Below are positions 17,133 to 46,038 of a DNA stretch of 64,000 nucleotides, piece by piece. The DNA comes from Phaeosaccion multiseriatum (taxonomy: Eukaryota > Protista > Ochrophyta, other classes), in contig OZ218952.1 of assembly GCA_965112735.1 (NCBI GenBank), positions 5,146,001 to 5,210,000 on the forward strand, written 5' to 3'. Under the pieces are notes generated by a model that made no database searches, had not been told where the DNA came from, and was given only the letters and a program-made list of their open reading frames with translations. The translations under genes were made by a program, and so were the position numbers. The first letter of the stretch is position 1. Each line of letters opens with the position of its first letter.

Positions 17133-17194
<62 letters not shown>

Positions 17195-18179
17195 CCATCG
17201 GGTTCTGCTGGCCCCAACAGGAAGGGGTCCAGGCCTGACTCTGCATGCACCTTCGTTTCTGTGCCCCTCCTCCCCCTCTGCAGCACACAGGGCAGCCCGT
17301 CCATCGTGTGTCGGCAGGGGGCCGCTGCAGTGGTGGCGCAGAGCTTCGATGTGCTGCGGCTTATGTTGACCCTCAATGAGGCAGAGACCATCCGAAGACC
17401 CTCAGGAGCGGCGGTGGCGGCGGCGGAAGACGCACCGGAGGGTAGCGGCGGCCCTGCGCTCCCCCCCACCCCAGCCACAGAAACCTCCGCCAACCTTAAC
17501 GCCGACAAGAAGGCCCCACATAAGGCCGCGACCAAGGCCCAAGGGGGGAGGGCCCAGGATGCAGATGCACACGCAAATGCAGGCGGGAGGCTTGCCCCAG
17601 CAGTCGAGACTGCGAGCGAGAGCCACCTACAGCGCAAGCAGCAGCAGCTGAGCCGCCGCCGGAGCTCTTTGATCCGCCACGAGCAGACGGTGGAGGAGCA
17701 GCTGCATGGGCTGGGCAGGCGTGGCGTGCGGCAGATGGTGGCGGCCGTACGCTTCCACATACACGACCCCGTTGTGTCAGTGGCGGGCTGCCAGGCGCTG
17801 TTTGCGTACCTGCGCTTGAGCCAGGAGGCGTCGGCGGAGAGCCGGGAGGCAATCTTTGGAGCGGCCGGGTCCATCCTCGCGGGGCGCGACGACCGCTCCA
17901 GCCTGCTGGTGGCGCGGCTGCTGCTGGACTGCATCGAGCTCGACATGAAGGTGGCGCCGGTGGTGTGGGTGTCTCTGGCGAGCCTGGCGTGTTTGCACGG
18001 CATGGACAAGTATGCCCTGCCCTTTGTCTTGAGGGCCAAAGGTACGTGGTTTGTCATGGTTCATCTCTAGGCGAGTGGGCCGCATGGGGGATTGCTAAAG
18101 AAGGACTAGGAGAGCGGGGTGCCTTTTCAATCTCCAGCTCGAACAGACGGCTCGGCCCCGCATAATCTCGGCCCCTCCC

Positions 18180-21553: not shown

Positions 21554-24500
21554 ATGGAGCTCTCTCTGCGACGCGCACTGCGCCTGATGCTACTGTCAGT
21601 GGTGGTGTTGGGACAGCAGATCGGCACAGTTCACGGCAAAGGTAAGCAGAGCCTTGTTGCCTTGGCGCCCCTGCTGCAGCCAGCTGGATGTTGAAGCAAG
21701 AACACACTAACTCAGTCGGTCCCGAAGAAGAATGGAGCTGTAGCCGGCGATACAGCCGGCCGAGCGAGGGGAAAGTGACTAGGCAGTCAGCACTTGAGGG
21801 CGGCAGTGAGGATTGGCTGGGCAGCCATTGCCTGGCTCGCGGCAATCAACGGCCGTGGCTGGGCGGGGGAAACAACCTGGGAAGTTAAGCAAACCCCTGG
21901 TGACTTCTGCAAAGCATCAGCAGCCAGCACCAGGCGAAGATTAAACTGCTCCTCCTCCTCCTCCTCCTCCTCCTGCTCCTCCTCCTCCTCCTGCTCCTGC
22001 TCCTCCTCCTCCCCCTCCTCCTCATCCTCCTCCTCCTCCTCCTCCTCCTCCTCCTCCTCCTCCTCCTCCTCCTCCTCCTCCTCCTCCTCCTCCTCCTCCT
22101 CCTCCTCCTCCTCCTCCTCCTCCTCCTCCTCCTCCTCCTCCTCCTCCTCCTCCTCCTCCTCCTCCTCCTCCTCCTCCTCCTCCTCCTCCTCCTCCTCCTC
22201 CTCCTCCTCCTCCTCCTCCTCCTCCTCCTCCTCCTCCTCCTCCTCCTCCTCCTCCTCCTCCTCCTCCTCCTCCTCCTCCTCCTCCTCCTCCTCCTCCTCC
22301 TCCTCCTCCTCCTCCTCCTCCTCCTCCTCCTCCTCCTCCTCCTCCTCCTCCTCCTCCTCCTCCTCCTCCTCCTCCTCCTCCTCCTCCTCCTCCTCCTCCT
22401 CCTCCTCCTCCTCCTCCTCCTCCTCCTCCTCCTCCTCCTCCTCCTCCTCCTCCTCCTCCTCCTCCTCCTCCTCCTCCTCCTCCTCCTCCTCCTCCTCCTC
22501 CTCCTCCTCCTCCTCCTCCTCCTCCTCCTCCTCCTCCTCCTCCTCCTCCTCCTCCTCCTCCTCCTCCTCCTCCTCCTCCTCCTCCTCCTCCTCCTCCTCC
22601 TCCTCCTCCTCCTCCTCCTCCTCCTCCTCCTCCTCCTCCTCCTCCTCCTCCTCCTCCTCCTCCTCCTCCTCCTCCTCCTCCTCCTCCTCCTCCTCCTCCT
22701 CCTCCTCCTCCTCCTCCTCCTCCTCCTCCTCCTCCTCCTCCTCCTCCTCCTCCTCCTCCTCCTCCTCCTCCTCCTCCTCCTCCTCCTCCTCCTCCTCCTC
22801 CTCCTCCTCCTCCTCCTCCTCCTCCTCCTCCTCCTCCTCCTCCTCCTCCTCCTCCTCCTCCTCCTCCTCCTCCTCCTCCTCCTCCTCCTCCTCCTCCTCC
22901 TCCTCCTCCTCCTCCTCCTCCTCCTCCTCCTCCTCCTCCTCCTCCTCCTCCTCCTCCTCCTCCTCCTCCTCCTCCTCCTCCTCCTCCTCCTCCTCCTCCT
23001 CCTCCTCCTCCTCCTCCTCCTCCTCCTCCTCCTCCTCCTCCTCCTCCTCCTCCTCCTCCTCCTCCTCCTCCTCCTCCTCCTCCTCCTCCTCCTCCTCCTC
23101 CTCCTCCTCCTCCTCCTCCTCCTCCTCCTCCTCCTCCTCCTCCTCCTCCTCCTCCTCCTCCTCCTCCTCCTCCTCCTCCTCCTCCTCCTCCTCCTCCTCC
23201 TCCTCCTCCTCCTCCTCCTCCTCCTCCTCCTCCTCCTCCTCCTCCTCCTCCTCCTCCTCCTCCTCCTCCTCCTCCTCCTCCTCCTCCTCCTCCTCCTCCT
23301 CCTCCTCCTCCTCCTCCTCCTCCTCCTCCTCCTCCTCCTCCTCCTCCTCCTCCTCCTCCTCCTCCTCCTCCTCCTCCTCCTCCTCCTCCTCCTCCTCCTC
23401 CTCCTCCTCCTCCTCCTCCTCCTCCTCCTCCTCCTCCTCCTCCTCCTCCTCCTCCTCCTCCTCCTCCTCCTCCTCCTCCTCCTCCTCCTCCTCCTCCTCC
23501 TCCTCCTCCTCCTCCTCCTCCTCCTCCTCCTCCTCCTCCTCCTCCTCCTCCTCCTCCTCCTCCTCCTCCTCCTCCTCCTCCTCCTCCTCCTCCTCCTCCT
23601 CCTCCTCCTCCTCCTCCTCCTCCTCCTCCTCCTCCTCCTCCTCCTCCTCCTCCTCCTCCTCCTCCTCCTCCTCCTCCTCCTCCTCCTCCTCCTCCTCCTC
23701 CTCCTCCTCCTCCTCCTCCTCCTCCTCCTCCTCCTCCTCCTCCTCCTCCTCCTCCTCCTCCTCCTCCTCCTCCTCCTCCTCCTCCTCCTCCTCCTCCTCC
23801 TCCTCCTCCTCCTCCTCCTCCTCCTCCTCCTCCTCCTCCTCCTCCTCCTCCTCCTCCTCCTCCTCCTCCTCCTCCTCCTCCTCCTCCTCCTCCTCCTCCT
23901 CCTCCTCCTCCTCCTCCTCCTCCTCCTCCTCCTCCTCCTCCTCCTCCTCCTCCTCCTCCTCCTCCTCCTCCTCCTCCTCCTCCTCCTCCTCCTCCTCCTC
24001 CTCCTCCTCCTCCTCCTCCTCCTCCTCCTCCTCCTCCTCCTCCTCCTCCTCCTCCTCCTCCTCCTCCTCCTCCTCCTCCTCCTCCTCCTCCTCCTCCTCC
24101 TCCTCCTCCTCCTCCTCCTCCTCCTCCTCCTCCTCCTCCTCCTCCTCCTCCTCCTCCTCCTCCTCCTCCTCCTCCTCCTCCTCCTCCTCCTCCTCCTCCT
24201 CCTCCTCCTCCTCCTCCTCCTCCTCCTCCTCCTCCTCCTCCTCCTCCTCCTCCTCCTCCTCCTCCTCCTCCTCCTCCTCCTCCTCCTCCTCCTCCTCCTC
24301 CTCCTCCTCCTCCTCCTCCTCCTCCTCCTCCTCCTCCTCCTCCTCCTCCTCCTCCTCCTCCTCCTCCTCCTCCTCCTCCTCCTCCTCCTCCTCCTCCTCC
24401 TCCTCCTCCTCCTCCTCCTCCTCCTCCTCCTCCTCCTCCTCCTCCTCCTCCTCCTCCTCCTCCTCCTCCTCCTCCTCCTCCTCCTCCTCCTCCTCCTCCT

Positions 24501-27500: not shown

Positions 27501-30500
27501 CCTCCTCCTCCTCCTCCTCCTCCTCCTCCTCCTCCTCCTCCTCCTCCTCCTCCTCCTCCTCCTCCTCCTCCTCCTCCTCCTCCTCCTCCTCCTCCTCCTC
27601 CTCCTCCTCCTCCTCCTCCTCCTCCTCCTCCTCCTCCTCCTCCTCCTCCTCCTCCTCCTCCTCCTCCTCCTCCTCCTCCTCCTCCTCCTCCTCCTCCTCC
27701 TCCTCCTCCTCCTCCTCCTCCTCCTCCTCCTCCTCCTCCTCCTCCTCCTCCTCCTCCTCCTCCTCCTCCTCCTCCTCCTCCTCCTCCTCCTCCTCCTCCT
27801 CCTCCTCCTCCTCCTCCTCCTCCTCCTCCTCCTCCTCCTCCTCCTCCTCCTCCTCCTCCTCCTCCTCCTCCTCCTCCTCCTCCTCCTCCTCCTCCTCCTC
27901 CTCCTCCTCCTCCTCCTCCTCCTCCTCCTCCTCCTCCTCCTCCTCCTCCTCCTCCTCCTCCTCCTCCTCCTCCTCCTCCTCCTCCTCCTCCTCCTCCTCC
28001 TCCTCCTCCTCCTCCTCCTCCTCCTCCTCCTCCTCCTCCTCCTCCTCCTCCTCCTCCTCCTCCTCCTCCTCCTCCTCCTCCTCCTCCTCCTCCTCCTCCT
28101 CCTCCTCCTCCTCCTCCTCCTCCTCCTCCTCCTCCTCCTCCTCCTCCTCCTCCTCCTCCTCCTCCTCCTCCTCCTCCTCCTCCTCCTCCTCCTCCTCCTC
28201 CTCCTCCTCCTCCTCCTCCTCCTCCTCCTCCTCCTCCTCCTCTTCCTCCTCCTCCTTCTCCTCCTCCTCCTCCTCCTCTTCCTCCCCCTCCTCCTCCTAC
28301 TCCTCCTCCTTCCCCTCCTCCTCCTGCTCCTCCTCCTTCTCCTCCTCCTCCTCGTCCTCCTCCTCCTCCTCCTCCTCCTCCTCCTCCTCCTCCTCCTCCT
28401 CCTCCTCCTCCTCCTCCTCCTCCTCCTCCTCCTCCTCCTCCTCCTCCTCCTCCTCCTCCTCCTACACCTCCTCCTCCTCCTCCTCCTCCTCCTCCTCCTG
28501 CTCCTTCTCCTCCTCCTCCTCCTCCTTCTCCTCCTCCTCCTCCTCCTCCTCCTCCTCCTTCTCCTCCTCCTCCTCCTCCTCCTCCTCCCCCTCCTCCCCT
28601 CTCTCCTGATTCTCCTCCTCCTCCTCCTCCTCCTCCCCCTCGTCCCCTCTCTCCTGTTTCTCCTCCTTCCCCTCCTTCTCCTGTCATTTCTACTACTGAT
28701 GAAGCCAGCTACTGTGCAATGCTCGTCGGACGTGGGCTTTGGAGCAATACATACAGAGTCATCACTCGTAAAACCATGTAGCCTTGGGCTGCTCCTCTTG
28801 TTCTGCTTTTGAGCTAGTATATACTCCTGAACCTCGTACTAAACCCCGCCCCTTTGTTCTGCTCCTGTGCCCTTCCTGTCTCCTCTCCTCTCCTCTCCTC
28901 TCCTTTGTTCTACCGTTCTCACTGCCACTGGGCGTCATGTACCATGGTGGTCATCACATCAGACTTTCCTGGAATATGTCTACAGGCAGGAGGAACCATA
29001 GACGGCGATACTTGCTCCGACTGCACATCGGGCTCCCCCGTCATTTGCGACGCGGCTTCCTATGTATGTCAGGTGCGTCCGACCGCAGCATGTCTGCGCT
29101 ACGTAAGAGGGGCTGCCCGTGTGCCCCTGCCTTGCTGCTCCTCCCTAGGCAGCTGCTGGTCTTGATCTTCCTGCTCTGCGCTTCTTCAGGCAGGCAGTGA
29201 AGAGTGGTGGGATTGAAACCTGTCTGTGAGGAGCGGCTTGCTTGTGCGTGAGTGAAGGGTGGGGTAGTGGCATAACGGGCGAGCGACTCACTCCTCTGTG
29301 CTTCCTCTATCCATTCCCCCTGCTCGATTTTCCTGCCCCCCCACCCCCTTCCTTGCCCTGCCCTTGGCCTTGCACGGGCTCCTCCGGCTCCGCTCTCTTA
29401 TCTCCCTCGTCCCCTTCCTAACACTGGCTGCTGTCCCTTGACTTCATGGCGCGTCTCACTCCTGCTTGCTGGGCTGGTGGGACCCTCGCCCCCCTTCACC
29501 CCCACCCTTGCACCGCCGGGACTGGGCAACCTCCGTCCCCCCCCCCGTCCGTGGGTGCTGCGGACGTGGACAACGCTTCTCATCCTTCGCGGCTCTCCCA
29601 GTCTAAGACATTTGACGTAAGTCTAAGTGTCACTGCTCTCTTCTGCTCTTGGCTGGGAACACAGACTCGTGTATGGTCATCGCCACTAGCTTTTGATGCC
29701 TGCACCACCCCTCGCTTCGTCTGCCTGTCGCTGGCCTACCAGTACGCTGTACTGTCGCTTGCCTTTGTGTGCGTTTGTCGAAAGTCCTTTTGGTGTGCAA
29801 TGCTCAGATGAAGTCATTCCTCCTGTAGTATTGCGCAATACTGTAGTAAGGCGCAATATTCGAGCATAGCACATTGGGTACTTTGACTTGACCCGACTGA
29901 TGCCCAACGAACGTCTTGGATGGCGTCACTGGAACCCCTCCAACGTGTCACCTCATGCCATGACCATCCTGTTGCTTGCTTGCTGCTCTTTGCTCGCCTT
30001 GCAGAACTGCGTCGTGGAGTGCAGCGCTGCCTATGTGTGTATTGTGAGTCGGTGACGTGAAGCCCTTTCCAGCTCGCCCCATCCAAAGAGCACTACTGCT
30101 GATTCGCCAGTTCTTCTTGGATCTCGAGGGGATGATGGGGAGACGAGAAATGGATTAGCCCTATCAACTCCGGCTCCCCCCCATCGGATGTTGCTTTACT
30201 TGCTCGACTCGTGTGTGGGCTGTCCCGTCCCCTCCTTCTACTCTAGTTGCTTGCATTCTTCATTTGTTGTCGGCTAGCCTAGCTAAAGGCTTCCTCAGTT
30301 CCCTTACCTTCCGGTGTAGGCTGATTTGCCTTGAACTAACCCCCCCCTACCGCCCTCTGCATGCATCGCACCACCCCGTGCATCGCAGGGAGCATCCTTT
30401 GTAGGCACATCAAATGCTACCTGCAGCGACTTTGCTTGCTTTGTAAGTGTCGCTCTCTTCTTTTGGCGGACTTTACATGTACAGCAGCCAGCACCGCCGC

Positions 30501-33500
30501 ACCCTCCTGCTGGCCTCCTTTTCCATCTGCTGCCGCCTGAGACTTGGCTTGTCGCTGCTGGTGCCCTTGGACTTCCCCCCCTTCTCCCAGAGGCTTCTTG
30601 GCTGTGAATTTGTGACTTGCTTGCTTCCTTTCCTCATGGCAAGCCCACAACCGGCCGAGCTGCACCGCATCTCAACACGCGCGCTGCCCCTTGTTCCCAT
30701 GAACAGACTTGTTTTGGCTGTTGTCTGCGCAAGACAACGCATCTATGCTTGGACTTTTTTGCACGCCTGTTGGTCCGGCCTCCGAGTGACAGAGTCTGCC
30801 TCATAAATCCCCCCCCCCGCTCATTGCCTGCCTGCCTGCGTGCTTTGCTTGCCTCTCCTCATCTGGCTGTGTTCATACAATGCACGGCGACTTTGTCTCC
30901 ACTTCGTTGCCACCACCAGAGCGCGAAAGTTTGCCTCTCACAGGGATCCCCAGGGGTAGAGGAGCAGGACTGCACGGCAAAGGTGACGTGCAGCGCATCA
31001 CTTGCTTGCCAGGTAAGTCGTCGCTGCAAAACAACCGGGGGAGGATTACTTTGATACCTTTGCACCAGTGGTGGGGAGCTCGACGATGAAGATGTTCTTT
31101 GCTATCACGTGCCAGAAAGAGTGGGCCTAGTATGGAGGAGACAGCATGTCAGTGCTTGCCGCTACGCGTGCGGCCCAGGCTGGGATCGTGGCCCCAGTCG
31201 TGCTCCTTGGCTCCCTTGTCGCCATCTTTGGCCACCACGTATGTCCAGAGTTTGCCTCTCTCTGGCGGCTCAGCCTGCTGCGTTGGCTCTTCCTGCTGCT
31301 GCTCTGCCTGTTGCTGCTCTGCCTGCTGCTGCTGCTGCTCTTGCTGCTCTACTTGCTGTTTCTGCTGCTCTCTCTGTTGCTGCTTTGCCGTCTGCTCCCT
31401 CTGTTGCCGCTCGGCGTGCTGACGTCGCTCCAGGCCTTCTCCTTCGAGTTGTAACTTCTCCACGAACTCTCGGGTGAGAACCTGTTCCCAGCGTGATGTC
31501 TGTTGCTGCTGTGGGGCTGGCTGTGCCTCCTCTAATCTCGTGTTCCATGTGACGGTTCCACTCTTGGTCCCGCCCCCACCTCCCCCGCTCGCGCTACTGC
31601 TGCTGCTCCTGCTGCTGCTCCTGCTGCTGCTCCCGCTGCTGCTCCTGCTGCTGCTCCTGCTGCTGCTCCCGCTGCTGCTCCTGCTGCTGCTCCCGCTGCT
31701 CGAGGGCTGGTCCTCGTCCTCGCTGTCATCCTCCTTCTCCGCTGTCTCTGGTAGCTTCCCCTTCTCCACGTGACTCCCGAACACCGTGCCGTCGTGTCTG
31801 CGGTTCGTCACGAATGTGTAGGACGAGCTGGAGATGAACCGCTTCTGTGAAGGGATGTAGAAAAGGAGACAGGCTGATCTGTGGTTGGGGCTCTGTCCCA
31901 CGTACACTGCCGAGTGCGTCTTGTCGTTGTGCCACTGCTTGTGCTTCTTGTTGCCCACCCGCACCTTCGCCTGCTCTCCGAAGATGTGTAGGTGCTGTAG
32001 GTCAGGCTTGCGCTTGAAATACAGCTCGTAGGGGGACTGCTGCTGCCCCCTCCTGCACCTGGTGTTGTAGAGAAGCTGCGCCAACTTGTACGCTACGAAC
32101 CTCAGCTGCTTCGAGTGCTCCTCCAGCTTCGCCTCCTCAATGAAAAGAATAGACATTCGCGCCAGCTCCTTGTGTCGAGCCTCGTTCAGTCCGTTCTGCG
32201 CTTGACAATTGGGGTCCGTCAGCTTGACCTCAATGCCCTGGGAGTAGAGCATCTTCTTCGCTGCCTTCGTCTTGATGAGCTCCGATCCGTTGTCTGCTGA
32301 CAGACACTGCACCTTGTACCCCGCTGTCCTCTCCCCTGGAATGAATACTGTGGTGTTGAGGTCGTCATACACGCTCTGGAAGTGCGCCTCCGTCTTTCCC
32401 CCCACCTTCCTGCACCAGCCCATACCCGTGTGCGGGCAGCACGCCTGCAACACGTGCTCTCCTTCGAGAGGAATGGTGTCGAGCGTTACCTGTGCCAGCG
32501 GTGCCTTGGGGTAGTCGATGAACTGCTTACTCTGAGCTGCCTTCGTCATCTTCACCTCTGCGCAAGTCTTGCACGGCGCCCTCTTCCCGCACAGTGTCAC
32601 GCCCTCCAGCTTGGCCTGTCGCCGTAGTTCTTGATCGTTGCGGTGGCCCTTCTTGCAGTGGTAAGTCATGTAATCACTCCACTGCTCCGTGGCCTCCTCG
32701 ATCTTGAATTGTAGCATGTCAAGCCCCAGCTCTGGGTCCTGCGTCGTGTGCACCGTCTCTGGTGCGTCTGCTGAGGGGCCGAAATAGACTGGCTTCCCCG
32801 CTGGCCTTGCGCTCCCCCCCAGTAGGTCTGAGAGGTTCTTCTCTGCAAAAATGCAGAAAGGTACGTCTGGCGACACCACTACCTCCAGCCCCTTCAGTCC
32901 TCTTTTGCCGTCGTTGGAGACGTAGCTGATGTTCACCTTCCCTTTGCCCATTATCTGCGCGTGCGACTTGCCGTCTGCGAGTTGCACTAAACTCTGATGA
33001 GCGCAGAAATCGTACAGTCCATCCAAGTTGGGCCACACATTGAGCGCCGATCCGCTGTCTGCGAGCCCCTGCCGTGTGCCATCCGCCCCCGACTTCAGCT
33101 TGGACATATGGTAGAGAGAATGGCCGCTCCCCCTCTCCTGTAGCGTCCACGGAATGCTGAAAATGGCGCTGGTGGAGCCTTCCACATGCTCGCCATCTTT
33201 CTTCTTCCTGCTGTTTGGGCAGTCTGCACGCTGGTGCCCCGGCTTGTGGCAGTTGAAACACAGCTCCTCCTTGGACGGACACGTCGTCCGCATGTGCCCC
33301 TTTCTCCCACACCTGTAACAGCGTGTGTTGGACCGATCTTTCTCTCCTGCCCCTGTGGTGGTCTGTCTACCCCCCCCTGCTGGTTGCTGTGTCTTCTGCC
33401 TTTGCTGGTAAATGTGGAAAAGGCCCCGCTCAAGGTCCTCTCCCGCCTCCCTCGCTTGCGCTTGGAGGTCACTGTCAAACCGCTGCACTTGCTGTTTGAA

Positions 33501-36500
33501 CCGATTAAACTCGTCCTCTGTTTCTACCGAATGACCGTGCACTTGGCCGAACGACTCCCATCTCTGCCCCATACGCCTGAGGAACTTGTCCTTGATGATG
33601 GAGTAGGACATAGGAAGCTGCTCCTCCGTCATCAACACGTTGAGTTGGAGAAACTTGTTGAGGTAGGCAAGTCCCGTCTCCCCCACCCCTGGCCTCAGAT
33701 CGTGCATCTCGGAGGTGAGAAACTCTTGTCGCTGTGACTGCGTGCTCCCCATCACTGCCTCCTTGATTGCCTGCATCAATAGTACCAGGTCCACTTGGAA
33801 CCGCGCTGTGCGAGTGCGTTCTTCTATGGCATCCCTCATGTCCGAGGGAATGGCCTCCAAAATCTTGAGGCCCGTCTGTTGGTACAGACTGAACGTCAGG
33901 GCATACTTAGAGTCCCGGGAGGCGTCGTCTGCGTTGGGGATCTTATCACTATCCACCAAGAATGCCTTTGCCCCCATCCCCCCTATGTGATCCGTGACCG
34001 CTCGCATAAATCGCAAGAGAGGCATCACTCCCTCCGATTCCAACTTCTTGTCAAACTCATTGTTCTTCGGCTTGAACGTGAGTTCCAGCAGCTGCTGTGC
34101 TGTACTCCCCCCCCCGCTGGGGGTCACTGTTCCTCCGACTGAGGAGATAGTGACTGGTGCTGCGGCCGCTGCCGTGGGCACTCCTTGCTGTGTGATGTGT
34201 TTGGCCAACGCTGCCGCTATCATCTTTTCCATCATTTCAGCCATCTGCTGCTGTGCGTCTCCTTCTATCGCGGAACTCGCACTGACGGGCGCCGCTGCGT
34301 CCGCCTTTTCAACGCCTTCTTCTTCCGCGCCTGGCATGGCTAACGAAAGGACTCCTTCTCTCTCACTTGAGTTATCCGACCAAAACTCGCCTGTGTGCCG
34401 TCGCCGACTACGTAGAACCAGCTAGCTGTGAAGTGTCGCGACAGCTGTCGTGTTGCGATATCTCCTCTACGATGACAGGGACAAGCTAGAGTAGTGTCAA
34501 CTCGTGTATTAATAATACCTACTGAGAGATGCGTTCAAGGAAGTGATGGCCGTGGCCATACATGAATATCGATATCCACATCGATATTGTACGTCGATAT
34601 AGTGCTCAGTCACAAATGGCGATACTTATCACAACACTCTCTTCTTCTGGCTGACTTTACATGTACAGCAGCAAGCACCGCCGCACCCTCCTGCTGGTCT
34701 CCTTTTCCGTCTTTGCCGCCTGAGACTCGTCACTGTTGGTGCCTTTCCCCCCCTTCTCCCAGAGGCTTCGCTCTTTGCTGTGAATTTGTGACTTCCTTCC
34801 TTTCCTCATGGCAAGCCCACAACCGGCCGAGCTGCACCGCATCTCAACACGCGTGCTGCCCCTTTTTCCCGTGAACAGACTTGTTTTGGCTGGCTGTTGT
34901 CTGCGCAAGCCAACGCATCTATGCTTGGAGTTTTTTGCACGCCTGTTGGCTGGCTGGTCCGGCCTCCGAGCGACAGAGTCTGCCTCATGAATCCTTCCCC
35001 CCGCTCATGATTGCCTGCGTGCTTTGCTTGGCTCCCTCTCCTCATCTGTGTTCATACAATATACGGCGGCTTTGTCTCCACTTCGGTTCCACCACTAGTT
35101 CGTGCTTGTTTGCATCTCATGGGGAGAAGTAGAGGAGCAACAGGAGTGCGAGGCGGAGCTGACGTGCAGCACTTCAAAGGCTTGCGGAGTAAGTCGTTGC
35201 TTTTCAATGGAACAAGGGGGGGGGGGGCGGGGGGGCGTAAGCAAGTCAACCTGTGGAGCTCACTCGCCGCTCAGTGCAGCTTACCGCAACCTTTGTGCGT
35301 ATTTTGATCCTCACGCGCAAAGCACCTGCTACGGATGCTGGCTTAGATGAGCTGCATTTGCTTGCCAAGATGTGGGTGGCTGACATGGAAAGAAAGAGGG
35401 CATGCGGCCGGGAGGCGATAGAAGGCACGACCGGAGGGATGAGGAGTCTAACTGGTGTACTTCCCACCCCCGCGACCCTCCCTCCTCTGGCCTTTCCTGG
35501 CCTCGCTGCACCCATCCGTCACCTCTGCAGGCTGTTGCGCTGTTAGGGAACTCCCGGGGCACTTGTGATGACGCCGGCTCCTGCGACGCCACCGACTTTG
35601 GGCCCCTTACGGTGCGTGCGCGAGGAGGGGGTGAGATGTAAGGAGTCCAGTAACGGGTTCATTTGACTTGGGGACTGTGCTGTTTGTTGCGGGAAGGTGA
35701 TGCCTGCATCGAGCTCCTGTCCTCACTGTTGTACTTTTGTCGAATTGCGTATTCTCAGGTTCAGACAACGACAGGAGGATCAGCGTGCTGCACTGGCGTC
35801 GGGTGGTAAGTCATCAAGCCCGAAGCAAAGCTCGATGCAGCGTGCGCGTGTATCCCCTCCTCAATGGCCGGCACGGTCATCCCTTGATGGTCATTTCCTC
35901 CCTTGCTGCGCTCGCCCGTACAAGTGTATGTGTGGCTGTGTGTGTGTGTGCCATTGCACGCTGCACCGTACTCCCTCACTCGCCCCTTCAAGCAAGGAAG
36001 CTCACTTTTATTTTCTCTGCCTGGTTTGTTTCGCTCCACAACCCCCCTCCCCCCTGTCTGCTCGACTCGTGCGACTCTTCGGCACGAGCGAAGCCCTGCG
36101 GACGTTATCGTATGCGGTGAGGACGATCCATTCATGTTCCTGCAGAGAAAGTGCTGAATAGCGCAAGGGGGCCTTGGAGCAACCCATGGAAGAGTCTCGC
36201 TTCCATCTATTTGCTGTCCCCTCCTTGTCTCCTGTCTACTGTCCCGCTTGATATCTGCCGCTTTTCATCGCACTGTGTGCACCTCGGATTCTTTTTCTGG
36301 AAGTGCTCTGCGGTAGCTAGTCTGACCCACTTTTCTCTGGTCTTTTGCGGCTGGGTCGCTCCCCGTCTCCTCCTGCCACGACGTCTCAGACATCGACGAG
36401 GACGGCATTGCAGACCATCTCGACAAGTGAGTGTTCTAAACTGTGGACAGACTGGAGTGGGAATGAAGATGTTGTGCGTGTTTGTGGGCGTGCTGATTGT

Positions 36501-39500
36501 GTGCGTGTCCCCCCCCAGCGTCTCCCTGTAGAGGGTCGACACACTGACTACATTGTCCCCCTCTCCTTGTTGCTCCTTGCTTGGTCCTCGCAGCTGCCCT
36601 GACGCAGACAACCCCAAGCAAGAGGATGCCGATGGAGACGGAGTTGGAGACGCTTGTGACAAGTAAGGAGCGAGTTTACGTGAATGTGCCCCCCCCAGCG
36701 TCTCCCTGTAGGGAGGGTCGACACACTGAATACATTGTCCCCCTCTCCTTGTTGCTCCTTGCTTGATCCTCGCAGCTGCCCTGACGCAGACAACCCCAAG
36801 CAAGAGGATGCCGATGAAGACGGAGTTGGAGACGCTTGTGACAAGTAAGGAGCGAGTTTGCGTGAATGTGCCCCCCCCCAGCGTCTCTCTGTCATGGCAT
36901 CGTCGCCCCCTGCCTGTCATGTTTTCCCGTGCGTGCGGGTTTGTGACTTGGCCGGCTCCCTCCTGTGTGTGGCCAAGTGCCCTGCCTGGTGTCTTTCTGC
37001 TTCCGTGGAGGAGCTCGCGCTGACTACACCTCCCTTCTCTCTGGCCTCTTTGCCTCCTCTGCTCCTTCCAGCTGCCCTTTTGTGGCCAACGCGGACCAGA
37101 CTATTGTCCCTAACTGTGGTGAGCAAGGGATGTATTGCCCTGGCTGGTGATGTGTAATGCTCTACTGACTTAGGTTGCGTGGCCTCCAGCGTCTATCGCG
37201 GTTTCGCCCCTGCTCGCCCACGCACCTTGTTTGCTGGCATCTAAGCTCGCTCCCCTCTTACCTTTCTACCGTTCTCACTGCCACTGGGCGTCATGTGCCA
37301 TGGTGGTCATCACATCAGCCTTTGCTGAATTATGTTACGAGGCAGAAGGATCCATATCAGGACCCGACAGTGATACTTGCTCCGGCTGCTCCTTACCCGT
37401 CATTTGCGACGACGCTTCCAATAGAGCATGTGAGGTGCGTCCGAGCGCAGCATGTCTGCGCTACGTAGGAGGGGCTGCCCGTGTGCCCCTGCCTTGCTGC
37501 TCCTCCCCAGGCAGCTGCTGGTCTTGACCTTCCTGCTCTGCGCTTCTTCAGGCAGGCAGTGAAGAGCGGTGGAATTGAAACCTGTCTGTGAGGAGCGGCT
37601 TGCTTGTGTGTGAGTGAAGGGTGTGGGGTAGTGGCATAGCGGGCGAGAGACTCACACCTCTGTGCTTCATCTGTGCGTTCCTCCTCTGCTCGATTTCCCT
37701 ACCCCCCCACCCCCTTCCTTGCCCTGCCCTTGGCCATGCACGGGCTTCTCCGGCTCCGCTCTCTGGTCTCCCTCGTCCCCTTCCTAACACTGGCTGCTGT
37801 CCCTTGACTTCATGGCGCGTCTCACTCCTGCTTGCTGGCTGGTGGGACCCTCGCCCCCCTTCGCCCCCACCCTTGCACCGCCGGGACTGGGCAATCTCCG
37901 TCCCCCCCGCCCGTCCGTGGGTGCTGCGGACGTGGACAACGCTTCTCGTCCCTGCGGCTCTCCCAGCGTAAGACATTTAACGTAAGTCTAAGCATCAGAC
38001 CTTCACCCTTGTCACTGCTCTCTTCTGCTCTTGTGAACACAGACTTGCGTACGGTCATCGCCACTATTGATGTCTGCACCGCCCCTCGCTTCGTCTGCCT
38101 GTCGCTGGCCTGCGTTTGTCCTAAGTCCTTGACTTCTTTTCGGTACTTTGACTTGACCAGACTGATGCCCATCGAACGTCGTGGATAGCGTCATTGGAAC
38201 CCCTCCAACGTGTAATCACCTCATGCCATGACCATCCGTATTGCTTGCTGCTCTTTGCTCGCCTTGCAGAACTGCGAAGTGGAGTGCAGCGGTGACTTTG
38301 CGTGTGGGGTGAGTCGGTGACGTGAAGCCCTTTCCACTTCACCCCATGCAAAGAGCACTACTGCTGGCTGGCCACTTGCTTCTTGGATCTCGAGGGGATG
38401 ATGGGGAGACGAGTAAAATGGATTAGCCCTAACAACTCTGCCGCCCCCCCCCGAGATGTTGCTTGTACTTGCTCGATTCGTGTATGGGCTGTCCTGTTCC
38501 CTCCTGCACCCCTAGTTGCTTGCATTCTTCACTTGTTGTCGGCTAGCCTAGCTAAAGAAGGCTTCCTCATTTCTCTTACTTTCCGGTGTGGGCTGATTGG
38601 CCTTGAACTCACTCCCCCCCCTGCTCTTATATGCATCGCACCACCCCATGTGCTCTTCCCCTGCACATGGCAGTTTGCATCCTTTCGCAGCGCCCATGCC
38701 CTGTAGAATGTGCATGCTGCTTCGAAGGAGAACTTCGATTGTCTGTGCTCCCCGTGACCTCCTCTCACGTGTGGCTGCTCTTACCCCCCCCCTCCTGCTA
38801 CTTGTTGCTTCTGTCGTTGCTACCTGTACCCGTTGTACCTCCTCCCCCTCCCCCGCTCGGACTGCTGCTCTTCGGCGATGGCTCTTGGTGCGAATTGTCT
38901 CTGCCGTTTCATACCTGGGGCCCTCTCTACCCTCGCTCGTGTGGCTGTATCAGATCGTCACCTTTGAGGTACGTAGAGCTTGACTTGTTGTGAACGAAGC
39001 CTGGTGCTTGATGAACAGTGAAGCGTGGCTGGCTTGGGCGCGGGTGGTGTCGTGCGGGGCGGGTTCATTGCCAGCCCATCGCTTGGTCTGACTGTCACCA
39101 CTCGCCTGCCAGTGTGCTGTAGCTAGTACCCCGAAGTGCCTTGGCGTGGGCGTTGCTTGGGCACTGGTTCGTGACTTTCGAACACTTCATCCCTATTGCT
39201 TGCCGCTCTTTGCTCGCCTTGCAGGACTGCGACGTGCAGTGCAGCGGCAACCGAGCGTGTGCGGTGAGTCGGTGACGTGAAGCCCTTTCCACTTCACCCC
39301 ATGCAAAGAGCACTACTGCTGGCTGGCCACTTCTTGGATCTCGAGGGGATGATGGGGAGACGAGTAAAAATGGATTAGCCCTAATAACTCTGCCCGCCCC
39401 CCCCGAGATGTTGCTTGTACTTGTTCGATTCGTGTATGGGCTGTCCCGTTCCCTCCTTCACCCCTAGTTGCTTGCATTCTTCACTTGTTGTCGGCTAGTC

Positions 39501-42500
39501 TAGCTAAAGGCTTCCTCAGTTCTCATACTTTCCGGTGTGGGCTGATTGGCCTTGCTTGAACTCACTCCCCCCCTGCCGATATATATGCATCGCACCACCC
39601 CATGTGCTCTTCCCCTGCACATCGCAGTTTGCATTCTTCCTCGGCACCTCAAAGGCTACCTGTACGGGTAGTGAGTCTCGTTCGTGTAGGGTAAGTCTCT
39701 TTATCTTCGTCTGGCTATAGCTAGATGTACGCCTGCACCAACCGCGGCATCCTCCTAGCTGCTGGCGTGCTGTTATCCATCTCTCCCACCGCCTGAGATT
39801 AAACTCCTGGTGCCCTTCCTCCCTTTCTCCCGGAGGCTTCTTTGCTTCTTGTCTCAGGGGGAGGGGTTTGGGGGGAGACGAGTAGATGGAGATGCTGTAG
39901 TTGCTCGACTTGTTTTGTGGGCGCCCCGCTCCCTCCTCCTCCACACCACTAGTTGCTTACGTTCTTCATTTTTTTCCTCATTCCTCTTACATTCCGGTGT
40001 GGGCTGATTGGCCTTGCACTAACCCCCCTACCGCCCTCTGCACGCATCGCACCACCCCGCACATCGCAGAGAGCATCCTTCCTCGACGACTCAAAGGCTA
40101 CCTGCAGTGGGGAGGTTTCGTGTGATGTAAGTGTCGCTCTCATCTTCTTGCTGACTTTAAATGTACAGCAGCACCGCCGCACCCTCCTGCTGGCATCCTT
40201 TTCTGTCTGTTGCCGCATGAGACTCGTCACTGCCGGTGCCCTTCCTCCCATTCTTCCGGAGGCTTCTTTGCTTCTTGTCTCAGGGGGGGGGGTTTGGGGG
40301 GAGTGCCGAGACGAGTAGATGGAGGTGCTGTAGTTGTTCGACTTGTATGTGGGCGCCCCACTCCCTCCTCCTCCTCCACCACCACCACCACCACTAGTTG
40401 ATTACGTTCTTCACTTTTTTCCTCCGTTCCCTTACTTTCCGGTGTGGGCTGATTGGCCTTGAACTAACCCCCCTGCCGCCCTCTGCATGCATCGCACCAC
40501 CCCGTACATCGCAGATAGTATTCGTTCTCGGCGACTCAAAGGCTACCTGCGAAACTGCTCTTTCGTGCCTTGTAAGTGTCGCTCTCTTTTCTTCTTGCTG
40601 ACTTTACATGTAGAGCAGCAAGCACCGCCGCACCCTCCTGTTGGTGGCCTCCTTTTCCATATGTTGCCGCCTGAGACTCGTCACTGGTGGTGCCCTTCCT
40701 CCCCTTCTCCCAGAGGCTTCTTTGCTGTGAATTTGTGACTTGCTTCCTTATTTTCCTCATGGCAAGCCCACAACCGGCCGAGCTGCACCGCATCTCAACA
40801 CGCGTGCTGCCCCTTCTTGTTCCCATGAACAGACTTTCTTGTTTTGGCTGTTGTCTGCGCAAGCCAACGCACCTATGCTTGGACTTTTTGCACGCCTGCT
40901 GGTCCGGCCTCCGAGCGACAGAGTCTGCCTCATGAATCCTCCCCCCCGCTCATTGCCTGCCTGCGTGCTTTGCTTGCCTCTCCTCATCTGTGTTCATAAA
41001 ATGCACGGCGGCTTTGTCTCCACTTCGGTACCACCACTAGAGCGTGGTAGTTTGCCACTCACAGGAAGGAAAGGAGGAGCAGGACTGCGAGGCGGAGCTG
41101 ACGTGCAGCGATTCAAATGCTTGCGTAGTAAGTCGTTGCTTTTCAATGAAACGAAGGGGGGGGGGGGGGTGGGACGTAAACAAGTCACCTGTGAAGCTCA
41201 CTCGCCGCTCAGCGCAGCTTACCGCAACCTTTGTGCATATTTTGATCCTCACGCGAAAAGCACCTGCTACGGATGCTGGCTTAGATGAGAGCTGCATTTG
41301 CTTGCCAACATGTGGCTGGCTGGCATGGAAAGAAAGAGGGCGTGCGGGAGGCGATCGACGGCACGACCGGAGGGACACTAGAATATGGAGTCTAACTGGT
41401 GTATTTCCCACCCCCGCGACCCTCCCTCCTCTTGCCTTTTCTGGCCTCGCTGCACCCATCCGTCACCTCTGCAGAGTGTTGTGCTGTTCGGGAACTCCCG
41501 GGCCACGTGTGATGTGGCCGAGTCCTGCGAGTTAGTTACGGTGCGTGCGCGAGGAGGGGGTGAGATGTAAGGAGTCCAGTAACGGGTGTCATTTGACTTG
41601 GGGACTGTGCTATTTGTTGCGGGAAGGTGATGCCTGCATCGAGCTCCTGTCCCCACTGTTGTACTTTTGTCGAATTGCGTATTCTCAGGTTCGGACAACG
41701 ACAGGAACAGCGTGCTGCACTGGCGTCGGGTGGTAAGTCATCAAGCCCGAAGCAAAGCTCGATGCAGTGCGCGCGTGTACCCCCTCCTCGATGGCCGGCA
41801 CGGTCATCCCTTGATGGTCATTTCCTCCCTTGCTGCGCTCGCCCATACAAGCTTATGTGTGTGTGTGTGCGGTGTGCCATTGCGCGCTGTACCGTACTCC
41901 CTCGCTCGCCCGTTCAAGCAAGGAAGCTCACTTTTATTCTCTCTTTCTGGTTTGTTTCGCTGCCTCCACAACCCTCCCCCCCCCCCCTGTCTGCTCGACT
42001 CGTGCGACTCTTCGGCACGAGCGAAGCCCTACGGACGTTACCGTATGCGGTGAGGACGATCCATTCATGTACCTGCAGAGAGCGTGCTGAATAGCGCAAG
42101 GGGACCTTGGAGCAACCCATGGAAAAGTCTCGCTTGCATGGGCCCTTCCTTCTACTCCTCCTCCTTGTCTGCTGTCCCCCTTTATTATCTGCTGCTTTTC
42201 GTCCCACAGTGGATATCCTTTGAAACATCACAGGACTGACTGTATTGCCCTGGCTGGTGATGTGTAATACTCTACTGACTAAGGTTGATATATCTCTCTC
42301 TCACTCATTCCTTAATTTGGACGATGTGGTGGTGCTTGCTTTCAGACGAGGATGGCCAGATGGAAGGAGACCCGATGGTTTTCGGCTTCAAGCAGCAAAT
42401 CTTCCTCTTCAAGGGAGCCCACAACGCTTGGTACGCTGCCTTGGCGGAGAGGCACTTGCAGTTAAACTGGAGGCTGTCCGTCTTCCCCTCCTGCGAGAAC

Positions 42501-43739
42501 GGCGCTCAGCCGGTGAGTCAAGAGAAGCGGCGGTATTGGGGGGACTCGTCGTCGAATCTGAGCACTTGAGCTCCCGAGACAGTCAGCCAGTGACAGGGTG
42601 GAGAGGACTCCTTGCATGGTGCTTCGTATGAGTCCTGCCTGTGCCCTCTTGCCTTGCCTGGGGATGGTGGATGGCACCCTATACCAGTGCCACCGCTCTC
42701 GTCAGCCACCCACCCTGGTCAAGTACTGGCCGTTCCCCTTACTGCCTCACTCGCTCCTCTTTTCGCTCGGTGGCGGTCTCACGCGTGACTTGTCGGTCTC
42801 TTCTCTCTCTCTTCCATTAGCCAGACTCCTTGGCTTGCCCCCCTTTGACTCATGAACCCCTCATCACCTTCCCTTTGCAAGCACACAACCGCACGCACGC
42901 ACGCACGCACACAGACATACGCCACCGCCTTGGCCTTTACCTTCCCCCCCCCTCTGGACGGGGATGACAAGACCGCTCTCCTTGGAGGGGCGGGCACGGC
43001 TGCGTCGTCGAGAGTGCTGGTGGAGGTCATAGACGTGGAAAAGTACAACCCAGACTACATCCAGGGGGAGGAGCTCACACCCCGTGCCGAGCAAATCCTG
43101 GGCTACGGCTCTCTGAGAGTCACCATCGAGGACAAGAAAATCACCAAGCCGGGGCTCTACCACATGGCCAACGGTGGTAAAGTGATGGCCTTCAACGCGT
43201 ACGGCCCCTGTCAGGTGAAGCGCGACATCCACATGATGGAAGAGCTCAACGAGGCGGAGAGGCTCAAAGCCTCGCCTCTCAGACGCCGCCTCTCGGAGAT
43301 GGCAGTGGATGACGACCTTGCAGCGCTGCTGGCTGTGGAGTCTCGCCTGCACAGGGCCGAGGATAGGACCCTTTGTGAAGAGTGGATCGCAGACAAGCGC
43401 GTCAAGAGGAATCTCTTCACGGAGCCCGGGTCGTGGGCGAGCGTTTACATCTTCACCGACACGTACTCCTTCCAGGTGGACTACCGCCAGGAGATTGAGC
43501 GCTGCTACGCCCATGTGCTCGACGTTGGCTTCATCCACAAGCCCAATGACATCGGCGTGGAGCGCTGGAGCGGGGTCATGGGAGAGACTCAGATCCTGAA
43601 ACGCGACAGCTCTGGGCATCCCCTCGACAGGGAGAGGGACCTCATCCTGTCCTCCTCCAAGGACGAGGACTACGTCGTGGACGGGCCCTGGGGGACGGAC
43701 TTTGTGGCCCGCTTCGACAGCGCCTGGGAGGAGGAGTAG
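21554..43739 (+). CDS. Large secreted Cys-rich micro-exon protein (~793 aa): signal peptide, Cys-repeat module 1, TSP3 repeats, Cys-repeat module 2, VWD-like C-terminal domain
   Basis: 28 AG/GT-bounded exons join in phase without stops (2382 nt): 21554-21641, 28963-29072, 29602-29616, 30005-30043, 30389-30442, 30944-31012, 35144-35188, 35531-35611, 35759-35805, 36094-36116, 36390-36426, 36594-36662, 36776-36844, 37072-37118, 37319-37434, 37967-37981, 38270-38308, 38954-38968, 39225-39263, 39628-39690, 40070-40126, 40515-40571, 41065-41127, 41475-41540, 41689-41732, 42027-42049, 42346-42512, 42915-43739. Starts MELSLRRALRLMLLSVVVLGQQIGTVHG-K. Contains CPDADNPKQEDADGDGVGDACDN and GDPMVFGFKQQIFLFKG. 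Confidence 0.75.
21949..28680. repeat. Giant (TCC)n/(GGA)n trinucleotide array; uninterrupted about 22025-28242 (~2070 units) with degenerate flanks
   Basis: Directly visible in the sequence. It lies in the first coding intron of the 21554-43739 gene. Confidence 0.95.
31032..31130 (+). pseudogene. Inverted fragment of copia reverse transcriptase
   Basis: Plus strand reads QPGEDYFDTFAPVVGSSTMKMFFAITCQKEW, the copia RT motif Q.PG.DY.ETFAPV, on the strand opposite to the gag-int ORF. Confidence 0.8.
31149..34337 (-). CDS. Copia gag-pol polyprotein, 1062 aa, ending before RT
   Basis: Two CCHC knuckles (CYRCGRKGHMRTTC, CFNCHKPGHQRADC), aspartic protease LADSGSA, HHCC (YHCKKGH...CKTC), integrase D-D-E (VTLDT, SADNGSE, QNGLNEAR) and SH3-like AVYVGQS. 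Confidence 0.9.
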   Translation of the reverse strand: MPGAEEEGVEKADAAAPVSASSAIEGDAQQQMAEMMEKMIAAALAKHITQQGVPTAAAAAPVTISSVGGTVTPSGGGSTAQQLLELTFKPKNNEFDKKLESEGVMPLLRFMRAVTDHIGGMGAKAFLVDSDKIPNADDASRDSKYALTFSLYQQTGLKILEAIPSDMRDAIEERTRTARFQVDLVLLMQAIKEAVMGSTQSQRQEFLTSEMHDLRPGVGETGLAYLNKFLQLNVLMTEEQLPMSYSIIKDKFLRRMGQRWESFGQVHGHSVETEDEFNRFKQQVQRFDSDLQAQAREAGEDLERGLFHIYQQRQKTQQPAGGGRQTTTGAGEKDRSNTRCYRCGRKGHMRTTCPSKEELCFNCHKPGHQRADCPNSRKKKDGEHVEGSTSAIFSIPWTLQERGSGHSLYHMSKLKSGADGTRQGLADSGSALNVWPNLDGLYDFCAHQSLVQLADGKSHAQIMGKGKVNISYVSNDGKRGLKGLEVVVSPDVPFCIFAEKNLSDLLGGSARPAGKPVYFGPSADAPETVHTTQDPELGLDMLQFKIEEATEQWSDYMTYHCKKGHRNDQELRRQAKLEGVTLCGKRAPCKTCAEVKMTKAAQSKQFIDYPKAPLAQVTLDTIPLEGEHVLQACCPHTGMGWCRKVGGKTEAHFQSVYDDLNTTVFIPGERTAGYKVQCLSADNGSELIKTKAAKKMLYSQGIEVKLTDPNCQAQNGLNEARHKELARMSILFIEEAKLEEHSKQLRFVAYKLAQLLYNTRCRRGQQQSPYELYFKRKPDLQHLHIFGEQAKVRVGNKKHKQWHNDKTHSAVYVGQSPNHRSACLLFYIPSQKRFISSSSYTFVTNRRHDGTVFGSHVEKGKLPETAEKEDDSEDEDQPSSSGSSSRSSSGSSSRSSSRSSSGSSSRSSSRSSSSSASGGGGGGTKSGTVTWNTRLEEAQPAPQQQQTSRWEQVLTREFVEKLQLEGEGLERRQHAERQQREQTAKQQQREQQKQQVEQQEQQQQQAEQQQAEQQQEEPTQQAEPPERGKLWTYVVAKDGDKGAKEHDWGHDPSLGRTRSGKH
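34451..34636 (-). repeat. Candidate 5' LTR (186 bp) of the copia element
   Basis: Minus strand begins TGTTGTGATA and ends TATCGCAACA (9/10 terminal inverted match). No partner LTR and no convincing adjacent primer-binding site, so the inner boundary is tentative. Confidence 0.5.
36509..36888 (+). repeat. 182-bp tandem unit consisting of one intron plus one 69-nt TSP3 exon (~2.1 copies)
   Basis: Near-identical units. Exons 36594-36662 and 36776-36844 differ by one codon (GGA/GAA). Confidence 0.9.
38674..38706 (+). pseudogene. Pseudo-exon of the Cys-repeat exon family
   Basis: Acceptor context matches that of exon 39628. It reads FASFRSAHAL then TAG, and the usual GTAAGT donor is absent. Confidence 0.6.
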
Positions 43740-44251
43740 TTGCTTAGTTAGGTGGGAAGGGAGGGGTAGGAGAGTGGATGGTAGCTGGGTGCTGCTGCTG
43801 GCTGGGCCTGGAGCACGAGAGAGATCGACGCGCCTTGTGAAGGGCCTTGTGGAGGGGAGGTGGCATGCGCATAGGAGCTCAGAGGGAAGCAAGGCTTGAG
43901 GGGGTTTCTTCGATTCGGAAGACAGTAGCTAGGGTTCTGCTGCTGATGGAGCTGTGTAGAAGAGGGGCTCCGGGCCTTGCTTGGTTGCCCTTCTTGGGGG
44001 ATGTTTCTTTAGTTTGCTTGGGGAGCTTAGTAGTGCTAGCGATGGGAAAGGGGGGTGTAGCTTATGTTATGTTAGTTTAGTTGGGAGGGGGTCGGAGGGA
44101 TTTATTGACTTATAGGGAATCACCCAAGAAACAAGCCGCTCCTCTCGGGCACTCTGTAGTTGGAGGTTTAGCTTCATTAGGAGGGGGGGGGGCATTTTAA
44201 AAGGGTAGTACGTACAGTAATCAAATTGGAGAAAAGAAAAAGAAATCAGTA

Positions 44252-45847: not shown

Positions 45848-46038
45848 TAGGTGCACGTGTTGGTTTCACACAAACCATTTGTTGGCGACTTTTTTGGGGC
45901 CCTTCCTGGCGACGAGAGCGAGAGCGATCTTCCCTTCTCCCCCCTCTCGCTCCCCTCCTTCCTTGCTGATTCTCGCCTCCCTCCTCCATCCTTCATGCTT
46001 TTTTCTACTCCCTGCTCCTCCTGCTGGTCACGCAGAAG

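Follow-up and report, generated by a model that had tools for sequence, protein, structure and literature searches.

Results

A probable gene of 28 exons in phase

The window analysed here is a stretch of 64,000 nucleotides (nt) from the alga Phaeosaccion multiseriatum (assembly GCA_965112735.1, contig OZ218952.1, positions 5,146,001 to 5,210,000); it is eukaryotic DNA with a GC content of ~60%. On its plus strand, from an ATG at 21554 to a stop codon ending at 43739, runs a chain of 28 exons that is probably one real, unannotated gene in the nuclear genome of a stramenopile-type alga rich in GC, coding for a predicted secreted matrix or cell-surface protein of ~790 amino acids (aa). An initial annotation, made from the sequence alone, had described 28 in-phase exons leading from a signal-peptide exon to the stop at 43739. 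Our own model was built by direct reading of 21.4–22.0, 28.6–31.2 and 34.3–43.1 kb, independently of those coordinates, and came out essentially identical. It differs in the number of exons of 81 nt or less, which is 22 out of 28 rather than 23 (three are 15 nt long and two are 23 nt), and in the length of the product, which is 790 aa rather than 793. No more than roughly half of the coding sequence lies in the small exons.

All of the predicted introns are bounded by GT and AG. The acceptors comprise 25 cag, 2 aag and 1 tag, the cag nearly always being preceded by a run of pyrimidines, and the donors read gtaag, gtgag, gtgcg or gtacg. Seventeen internal exons are of phase 0-0 with a length divisible by three, and the exons with other phases chain without a break (0-2, 2-1, 1-2, 2-2, 2-2, 2-1, 1-0), so that the spliced sequence is a frame of 2,373 nt with no internal stop. 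Most introns measure 150–900 nt; intron 1 (21642–28989) is 7.3 kb long and an intron that carries a transposon fragment takes up 4.1–4.5 kb.

The exons were picked for openness, and an open frame by itself is little proof. That the chain is more than chance is indicated by three independent signs. First, the insertions and deletions that separate paralogous copies within the gene are divisible by three in all eight cases found in exons and in only 10 of the 53 found in introns. Second, nine repeat exons all keep the cysteines and a Thr-Cys pair, while other positions vary. Third, exons 27 and 28 jointly encode a domain that can be aligned over its whole length, without interruption at the splice junction, to proteins of diatom transcriptomes. 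The exon chain and this evidence of coding constraint agree with the earlier view of the locus as a single long micro-exon gene with a predicted secreted, modular, Cys-rich product.

It is very unlikely that the chain combines more than one transcription unit, either with the exon at 21554 standing apart or with the two Cys-rich modules described below belonging to different genes. Such a division would suit the unusual length of intron 1 and of the transposon-bearing intron, and no reads join the parts. Yet exon 1 (21554–21641), which contains the ATG and a signal-peptide-like start, has a GTAAGC donor and an exit in phase 1, which fits the phase 1 entry of exon 2, and between 28683 and 28989 there is no candidate alternative start with a signal peptide. 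Likewise, neither a stop nor a start lies between the two modules, and the exons that connect them link the phases exactly, as 1-2-2-2-1.

Two cysteine-rich modules

The predicted protein is made up of a signal peptide, a first Cys module, three to four repeats resembling thrombospondin type 3 repeats, a second Cys module and a C-terminal domain resembling the von Willebrand D (VWD) domain. Residues 1–29 look like a signal peptide, with a basic start, a hydrophobic core of 10 residues and small residues at -3 and -1. Module 1 takes up residues 30–196 and module 2 residues 271–460, each containing 13% Cys. Both open with a cap exon coding for four Cys, continue with units of 18–27 aa and end with an exon of 44–47 nt reading ..ACCTGVG, followed by CPxDVxVC on a 23-nt exon, with one codon shared across the junction. 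This layout, in which a cap exon is followed by symmetric repeat exons of phase 0-0 (54–81 nt) and a split end, had been proposed in the initial annotation, and we find it twice, at 28990–36116 and at 37346–42049; the repeat peptides quoted there map to 30389–30442, 40070–40126 and 40515–40571. Most units are a single phase 0-0 exon with the pattern hydrophobic-x-hydrophobic-hydrophobic-Gly-x-Ser-x-Ala-Thr-Cys, a loop of 4–6 residues and a further Cys. Some are split into a 15-nt and a 39-nt exon, and one kind is an acidic exon with three Cys.

The first part of module 1 (28990–31012) comprises exon 2 (28990–29072, the cap with 4 Cys), exon 3 (29602–29616, 15 nt), exon 4 (30005–30043, 39 nt, 3 Cys), exon 5 (30389–30442, a 54-nt repeat) and exon 6 (30944–31012, 69 nt, 3 Cys), and is ~85–88% identical to module 2 over 28908–31025. 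Its end (35531–36116), 88% identical to 40584–42211, is formed by exon 8 (35531–35611, an 81-nt repeat), exon 9 (35759–35805, 47 nt, with ..ACCTGVG, leaving in phase 2) and exon 10 (36094–36116, 23 nt, coding for CPADVIVC and leaving in phase 1). Between these parts lies the doubtful exon 7 (35099–35188). Its portion at 35129–35188 is a copy of the acidic three-Cys exon in which the cacag acceptor, as judged by comparison with 30944–31012 and 41065–41127, has been lost by mutation. Exon 7 can be used only through a weak tag acceptor 30 nt upstream, and then gains 10 hydrophobic residues as well as a fourth Cys; the frame is equally intact without it, and it may be a dead exon.

Module 2 (37346–42049) has twelve exons, namely the cap at 37346–37434, 37967–37981 (15 nt), 38270–38308, 38954–38968 (15 nt), 39225–39263, 39628–39690, 40070–40126, 40515–40571, 41065–41127, 41475–41540, 41689–41732 and 42027–42049 (23 nt), all on the plus strand, as is every exon of the gene. 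In the three 15-nt exons, the length, the cag and gta splice sites and a Thr-Phe (TF) motif have been kept, even in the copy whose flanks have strongly diverged. Module 2 contains 25 Cys, and module 1 contains 22, or 18 if exon 7 is left out. The odd number in module 2 means that a Cys remains available to connect one chain with another, or that the three-Cys exons are not all used together.

Within the repeat, positions 2, 4, 5, 6, 8, 10, 11 and 12 form a conserved scaffold and positions 1, 3, 7 and 9 are variable. The repeats may form a beta-solenoid with one disulfide-braced coil per repeat, along the lines of the disulfide-stapled solenoid put forward in the initial annotation, this alternation of conserved and variable positions being its one, indirect support. 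A search of the PDB with a 19-position repeat profile returned noise only (best E-value 1.8), Pfam gave no match to single repeat or cap exons, and a phmmer comparison of the modelled Cys region with 84 proteins of the C-terminal domain family described below found no relative.

The two modules are connected by exons 11–14 (36390–36426, 36594–36662, 36776–36844 and 37072–37118; phases 1-2, 2-2, 2-2 and 2-1), which encode acidic units of the form DxDxDGxGDxCD..NCP (DxDxDGxGDxCDNCP), as in thrombospondin type 3 repeats. When one 22-aa exon was submitted by itself, the Pfam TSP_3 model scored 17.2 bits (E-value 0.0041), below its 25-bit cut-off; the motif is plain by eye.

A C-terminal domain shared with secreted stramenopile proteins

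Residues 461–790 form the C-terminal domain. Exon 27 (42346–42512) encodes its first 55 residues, including the sequence GDPM, and exon 28 (42915–43739) the remaining 274 aa together with the stop codon. Pfam recognized nothing on exon 28 or on 27 domains of the family, no homologue of exon 28 was found within a length window of 151–480 aa, and in the ESM Atlas exon 28 had no match above 0.79. The family emerged only from an exhaustive phmmer search with exon 28, which yielded 78 cluster representatives with E-values from 7.9e-29 to 1.6e-05 and identities of 28–43%. The named relatives come from the transcriptomes of the diatoms Stephanopyxis and Proboscia. In almost every full-length relative the match lies at the extreme C-terminus, in proteins of 113 to 1,977 aa whose N-terminal parts vary, being a subtilase, a gametolysin-like metalloprotease, a carbohydrate-binding module or nothing recognizable.

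The domain of these relatives is ~300 aa long and begins with a near-invariant Gly-Asp-Pro followed by G..GQ.F.F.G; further on come W-Y, W-N, four to six Cys, H.EY, W.G..GET and DYEV. Most of these motifs are present in the window protein, which has Q.DY for H.EY and DYVV for DYEV and has lost the Cys pair C95/C100. The residue after Gly-Asp-Pro is Met in the window and Leu, Ile, Val, Met or Thr in the relatives, in contrast to the GDPH of animal VWD domains; the His is absent here. On these features the window protein belongs to a family of stramenopile C-terminal GDPx domains, which is unnamed and has no Pfam model.

A structure was predicted with AlphaFold for the complete domain of one relative (P0001, residues 290–596), with both window exons included in the alignment. 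This model has a predicted local distance difference test score (pLDDT) of 87.3 and a predicted template-modelling score (pTM) of 0.86. When it was compared with the PDB by VIA-align, the 28 best matches were all of the VWD type, with Z-scores of 11.1–8.4 against 2.8 for the next chain; among them were MUC2, MUC5AC, VWF, FCGBP, RGMB (9.7) and Cypridina luciferase. Pro9 of the model aligns with Pro169 of RGMB, the first residue of the matched RGMB chains, which we take to follow directly on the RGMB cleavage site. Foldseek matches in the AlphaFold database were the C-terminal domain of inter-alpha-trypsin-inhibitor heavy chains (ITIH), MUC4, SUSD2, plant Root cap proteins and three more proteins, with a blank species column and Ectocarpus-style accessions, which are presumably Ectocarpus proteins. 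As modelled, then, the C-terminal domain has a VWD beta-sandwich fold with the motif correctly placed and the His missing. The suggestion that the architecture belongs to no recognized family thus fails for its C-terminal 330 aa, which fall into a widespread stramenopile family with a predicted VWD fold, and for its middle, which is thrombospondin type-3-like.

Growth and decay by exon cassettes

Module 2 and module 1 are 85–88% identical over 4.9 kb, introns included. Within module 2, a unit of 955 bp is present twice (38233–38684 versus 39188–39638, 91.5% identical) and a unit of 445 bp in 2.1 copies (39809–40726), each unit carrying one or two exons; this agrees with the idea of the initial annotation that exon duplication can vary the length of the array. 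The type-3-like exon at 36776–36844 is in turn a 182-bp tandem copy of 36594–36662. Not all copies have survived. On the plus strand at 38675–38707 lies a dead remnant corresponding to the start of the repeat exon 39628–39690; it has an in-frame stop and is cut at the duplication breakpoint, 38684/39638, where the similarity of the 955-bp copies ends. Together with the damaged copy in exon 7, these alignments indicate that the gene has grown by tandem duplication of exon-plus-intron cassettes, some of whose exons have decayed.

The introns also contain other DNA. Most of intron 1 is a (CTC)n microsatellite of 6.7 kb on the plus strand (21949–28682), for which Tandem Repeats Finder reported 748 copies of a 9-nt unit with 99% match and where the GC skew is -1.0. 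As the CTC lies on the sense strand, the pre-mRNA would bear thousands of pure-pyrimidine bases before its first acceptor. The intron at 31013–35098 contains, on the minus strand, a copia-like retrotransposon fragment of 3.6 kb (31026–34636) that did not figure in the initial annotation. It has an intact open reading frame (ORF) of 1062 aa (31149–34337) with Pfam matches to zf-CCHC (3.7e-07; gag zinc knuckle) and SH3_retrovirus (5.3e-08; integrase SH3-like); neither a reverse transcriptase nor a pair of long terminal repeats was seen in the fragment. On its two sides lie the copies of a 573-bp duplication comprising intron and exon sequence of the host (30453–31025 and 34637–35210, 86% identical), which is far too long to be a target-site duplication.

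Reads over 37300–43299 were available from runs X1–X4, which hold 0.66–0.69 of the sampled words. We considered these runs as evidence of expression and rejected them, the reads being genomic DNA. The DNA sample, of which there is one, is heterozygous over this segment or has close paralogues, many contigs being at about half depth and breaking at variants; this is why the runs hold no more than ~0.69 of the words. Loose contig ends point to paralogous loci with similar introns. The segment 42225–42290 is homologous to 37119–37170, in the intron after the last type-3-like exon, and loose contig ends at 42241 run into sequence resembling exon 14, so that the piece would be common to paralogous loci or to a second, ancestral set of type-3-like exons. 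In the rest of the window, tblastn with the gene model found no further family member.

Two joints in the DNA contigs, 39566>40024 and 39793>40218, each omit one 445-bp cassette with its exon, and each occurs in contigs of two runs. They may represent a copy-number variant or a paralogue, their sides being only 18–27 nt long. These joints bear on a stronger proposal of the initial annotation, namely a combinatorial system in which phase 0-0 cassette exons are skipped or chosen to give many solenoid lengths and surfaces from one gene. The idea has some appeal: skipping any of the 17 phase 0-0 exons would leave the frame intact, omission of one three-Cys unit would make the 25 Cys of module 2 even, and in the ROCO genes of brown algae the exons of the LRR cassettes are reported to undergo alternative splicing (Teng et al. 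2024, PMC11378527). However, the available reads are of DNA, and the joints, besides being short-sided and perhaps derived from paralogous loci, concern DNA and not splicing. The cassette exons, moreover, all have strong and uniform sites of the cag/gtaagt type, like constitutive exons. We therefore hold combinatorial splicing to be unlikely. Of the 'variable recognition system' envisaged for this locus, diversification in the germline stands, and nothing beyond it is supported.

Two features of the surrounding DNA may be added. A short way downstream of the gene, 44250–45850 is AT-rich (40% GC) and contains nested inverted arrays of the 10-nt sequences TTTTACGCCC / TTTGACGACG, resembling a miniature inverted-repeat transposable element. 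Upstream, in the region of another gene, a (GT)n/(CA)n microsatellite at 16900–17300 lies inside long ORFs on both strands and reads as runs of Cys-Val or Thr-His.

Exons have diverged faster than introns

Over all paralogous pairs within the gene, exons are 75.7% identical (420 of 555 positions) and introns 91.8% (4,263 of 4,642; Fisher p 2e-26), as expected if the repeat exons encode a fast-evolving surface and in keeping with the earlier suggestion of a variable one. In sliding windows the dips in identity fall on exons, the other dips being intron indels. Among 157 aligned codons the amino acid is changed in 67; of the 90 conserved codons, 6 have a synonymous change, which per site is about the intron rate. 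Exons have thus changed about three times as much as introns, mostly with a change of amino acid, while the cysteines and the scaffold of hydrophobic, Gly, Ser and Ala-Thr-Cys positions have stayed fixed. Variation among the DNA contigs, in which alleles and paralogues may be mixed, shows no concentration in exons, to which 8 of the 40 listed sites and 18% of the bases belong.

By the Nei-Gojobori method, the nonsynonymous distance (dN) is 0.29 and the synonymous distance (dS), which is inflated by codons with multiple hits, is 0.23. The resulting dN/dS of 1.26 (1.45 without the cysteines) is not by itself significantly greater than 1. The case for diversifying selection lies instead in the comparison with the introns, whose distance of 0.087 is about a third of dN, and it needs the introns to be neutral.

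The introns might not be neutral in this sense. They could have been homogenized by gene conversion or unequal exchange between cassettes, with converted exons purged by selection for diversity, or be conserved for the recognition of micro-exons, so that positive selection would not be the cause of the contrast. The tandem cassettes are 84–96% alike, which makes exchange likely, and the proportion of synonymous differences in exons (pS, 0.20) also exceeds the mismatch rate of introns (0.082). But this high pS stems from codons hit more than once, and the synonymous changes at conserved codons, albeit only six events, do not make the exons look older than the introns. The similarity of introns is even over hundreds of bases, moreover, and does not cluster at splice sites. 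In our judgement this account is rather unlikely, though better placed than the other alternatives considered here, and diversifying selection on the exons remains the preferred reading.

Discussion

The gene described here would encode a secreted protein in which each Cys module is a disulfide-braced array of repeats with N- and C-terminal caps. Diversifying selection would act on a binding surface made up of the exposed, variable positions of the repeats. The acidic type-3-like repeats could bind calcium and serve as a spacer, and the VWD-like domain would tether or multimerize the protein in the wall or matrix. This last role is the most likely one for the domain, since in its relatives it is found at the C-terminus behind unrelated secreted passengers. 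The germline would be the source of the diversity, both among repeats and among members of the family, with no sign that splicing mixes exons. A much wider proposal is that the gene is one member of a germline exon-cassette diversification system for extracellular recognition, with secreted two-Cys arrays that have diversifying binding faces, a repeat number varied by cassette gain and loss as well as by alternative splicing, and fixation to the wall through the VWD-like C-terminus. Taken as a whole, we consider this unlikely.

Several observations weigh against a working gene with such a product, in addition to the reservations on selection given above. The reads of runs X1–X4 cover introns and exons alike and contain no splice joints, which marks them as genomic DNA and not transcripts. 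An exact search of metagenome contigs for the spliced junction of exons 27 and 28 gave no match, and the protein and its close kin are absent from a collection of 15 billion proteins, in which the highest identity reached is 37%. The 6.7-kb microsatellite and the 3.6-kb transposon fragment in the introns, together with one damaged acceptor, mean that this copy could be decaying or poorly expressed, and the Cys count of module 2 is odd. As for the C-terminal domain, a model of exon 28 alone had a pLDDT of only 72.6 and retrieved no VWD fold (best Z-score 3.2), although this model is uninformative; it lacks the 55 residues at the start of the domain, which exon 27 encodes. We also claim no autoproteolysis: in domain D10 of FCGBP, replacement of the His in GDPH by Asn (H4082N) inhibited cleavage (PMC10880436), and here that His is missing.

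One could conclude from these facts that the locus is a silent or decaying family member, a recent pseudogene whose frame happens to be still unbroken. Besides the intron insertions, the odd Cys count and the absence from public collections, the lost acceptor of exon 7 and the truncated dead exon at 38675 would be in line with this. On the other hand, the 2,373-nt frame is whole over 28 exons with canonical splice sites throughout, exon indels come in threes only, and the C-terminal domain has kept the near-invariant residues of its family. We regard a pseudogene as quite unlikely, and a real gene with a predicted secreted product as the probable reading.

If the protein is expressed as modelled, stramenopile algae build secreted, disulfide-rich repeat proteins with one repeat per exon, using exons down to 15 nt. 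Genes with such tiny exons escape standard gene finders, and none of the collections that we searched contains this protein. Repeat surfaces that outpace neutral-looking introns would be typical of molecules whose partners keep changing, for example pathogens, symbionts, gametes or substrata. The same model would tie the Cys repeat to a widespread, uncharacterized VWD-like C-terminus found on many secreted enzymes of diatoms and brown algae, which, if true, points to a shared means by which algae anchor proteins in their wall or matrix. The gene also provides a concrete family in which to test whether exon-cassette diversification reaches from cytosolic LRR/TPR receptors to extracellular proteins. 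Should the recognition reading be true, the ROCO and NB-ARC-TPR repertoires of brown algae, for which a role in immunity has been proposed, would have an extracellular counterpart in this system.

Comparison with known systems

Micro-exon genes are known from schistosomes, where they encode small, mostly unstructured secreted products whose variation by exon skipping has been proven with transcripts. The present gene resembles them in its predicted secreted product, its runs of very short symmetric exons and its fast-evolving coding sequence. It is a looser analogue, however: there is no homology, the product here is large and Cys-rich, and only about half of its coding sequence lies in small exons.

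The likeness to the type 3 repeats of thrombospondins and COMP consists in the acidic DxDxDGxGDxCD..NCP units, their paired cysteines and their number of three to four. It is limited by the fact that the Pfam match of a single exon is below threshold, that there is one repeat per exon and that the flanking Cys modules are unrelated. The C-terminal domain shares with the VWD/GDPH domains of mucins, VWF, FCGBP, RGM, SUSD2, ITIH and plant Root cap proteins the predicted fold, the Gly-Asp-Pro at the first strand and the extracellular setting. It differs in an identity of only 7–15%, a helical insert of ~50 residues, the replacement of His by Met and its position, which is C-terminal in almost every full-length relative. 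The diatom GDPH adhesive proteins, as cited in two later reports (bioRxiv 10.1101/2023.03.06.531300, PMC7335047), are likewise secreted stramenopile proteins; they carry a GDPx-type motif and have been proposed to act in adhesion and matrix assembly. In Seminavis, the GDPH domain is described alongside separate vWD domains, and the diatom 'GDPH domain' and the C-terminal domain of the window may be either the same or different.

The closest published parallel is provided by the ROCO LRR and NB-ARC-TPR genes of brown algae, in which each repeat is encoded by one phase-0 exon, dead repeat exons persist in introns, and exon shuffling and positive selection have been described (Zambounis et al. 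2012, PMC3341825). Outside the LRR and TPR types, a later study found such a layout at very few loci (PMC11378527). The architecture of the present gene was not recognized as a described family in the initial annotation, but its layout has a precedent. Both systems have symmetric phase-0 repeat exons, tandem cassettes, dead exons in introns and signs of diversifying selection, and both belong to the stramenopile lineage. They differ in that the brown-algal proteins are cytosolic LRR/TPR proteins of the GTPase or NB-ARC type with exons of 72 nt, whereas the present one has a signal peptide, a two-Cys unit of 18–27 aa on exons of 54–81 nt (some of them split as 15 + 39 nt) and type-3 and VWD-like partners. 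LRR or TPR joined to ROC-COR or NB-ARC defines those genes, and no such domain is found in our gene model. Since there is neither a sequence relationship nor a ROC-COR or NB-ARC domain, the gene is an analogue of the ROCO and NB-ARC-TPR genes and not a member of their families. By this comparison, what would be new is a family of secreted Cys-repeat proteins with one repeat per exon, while the layout itself is one already known from brown algae.

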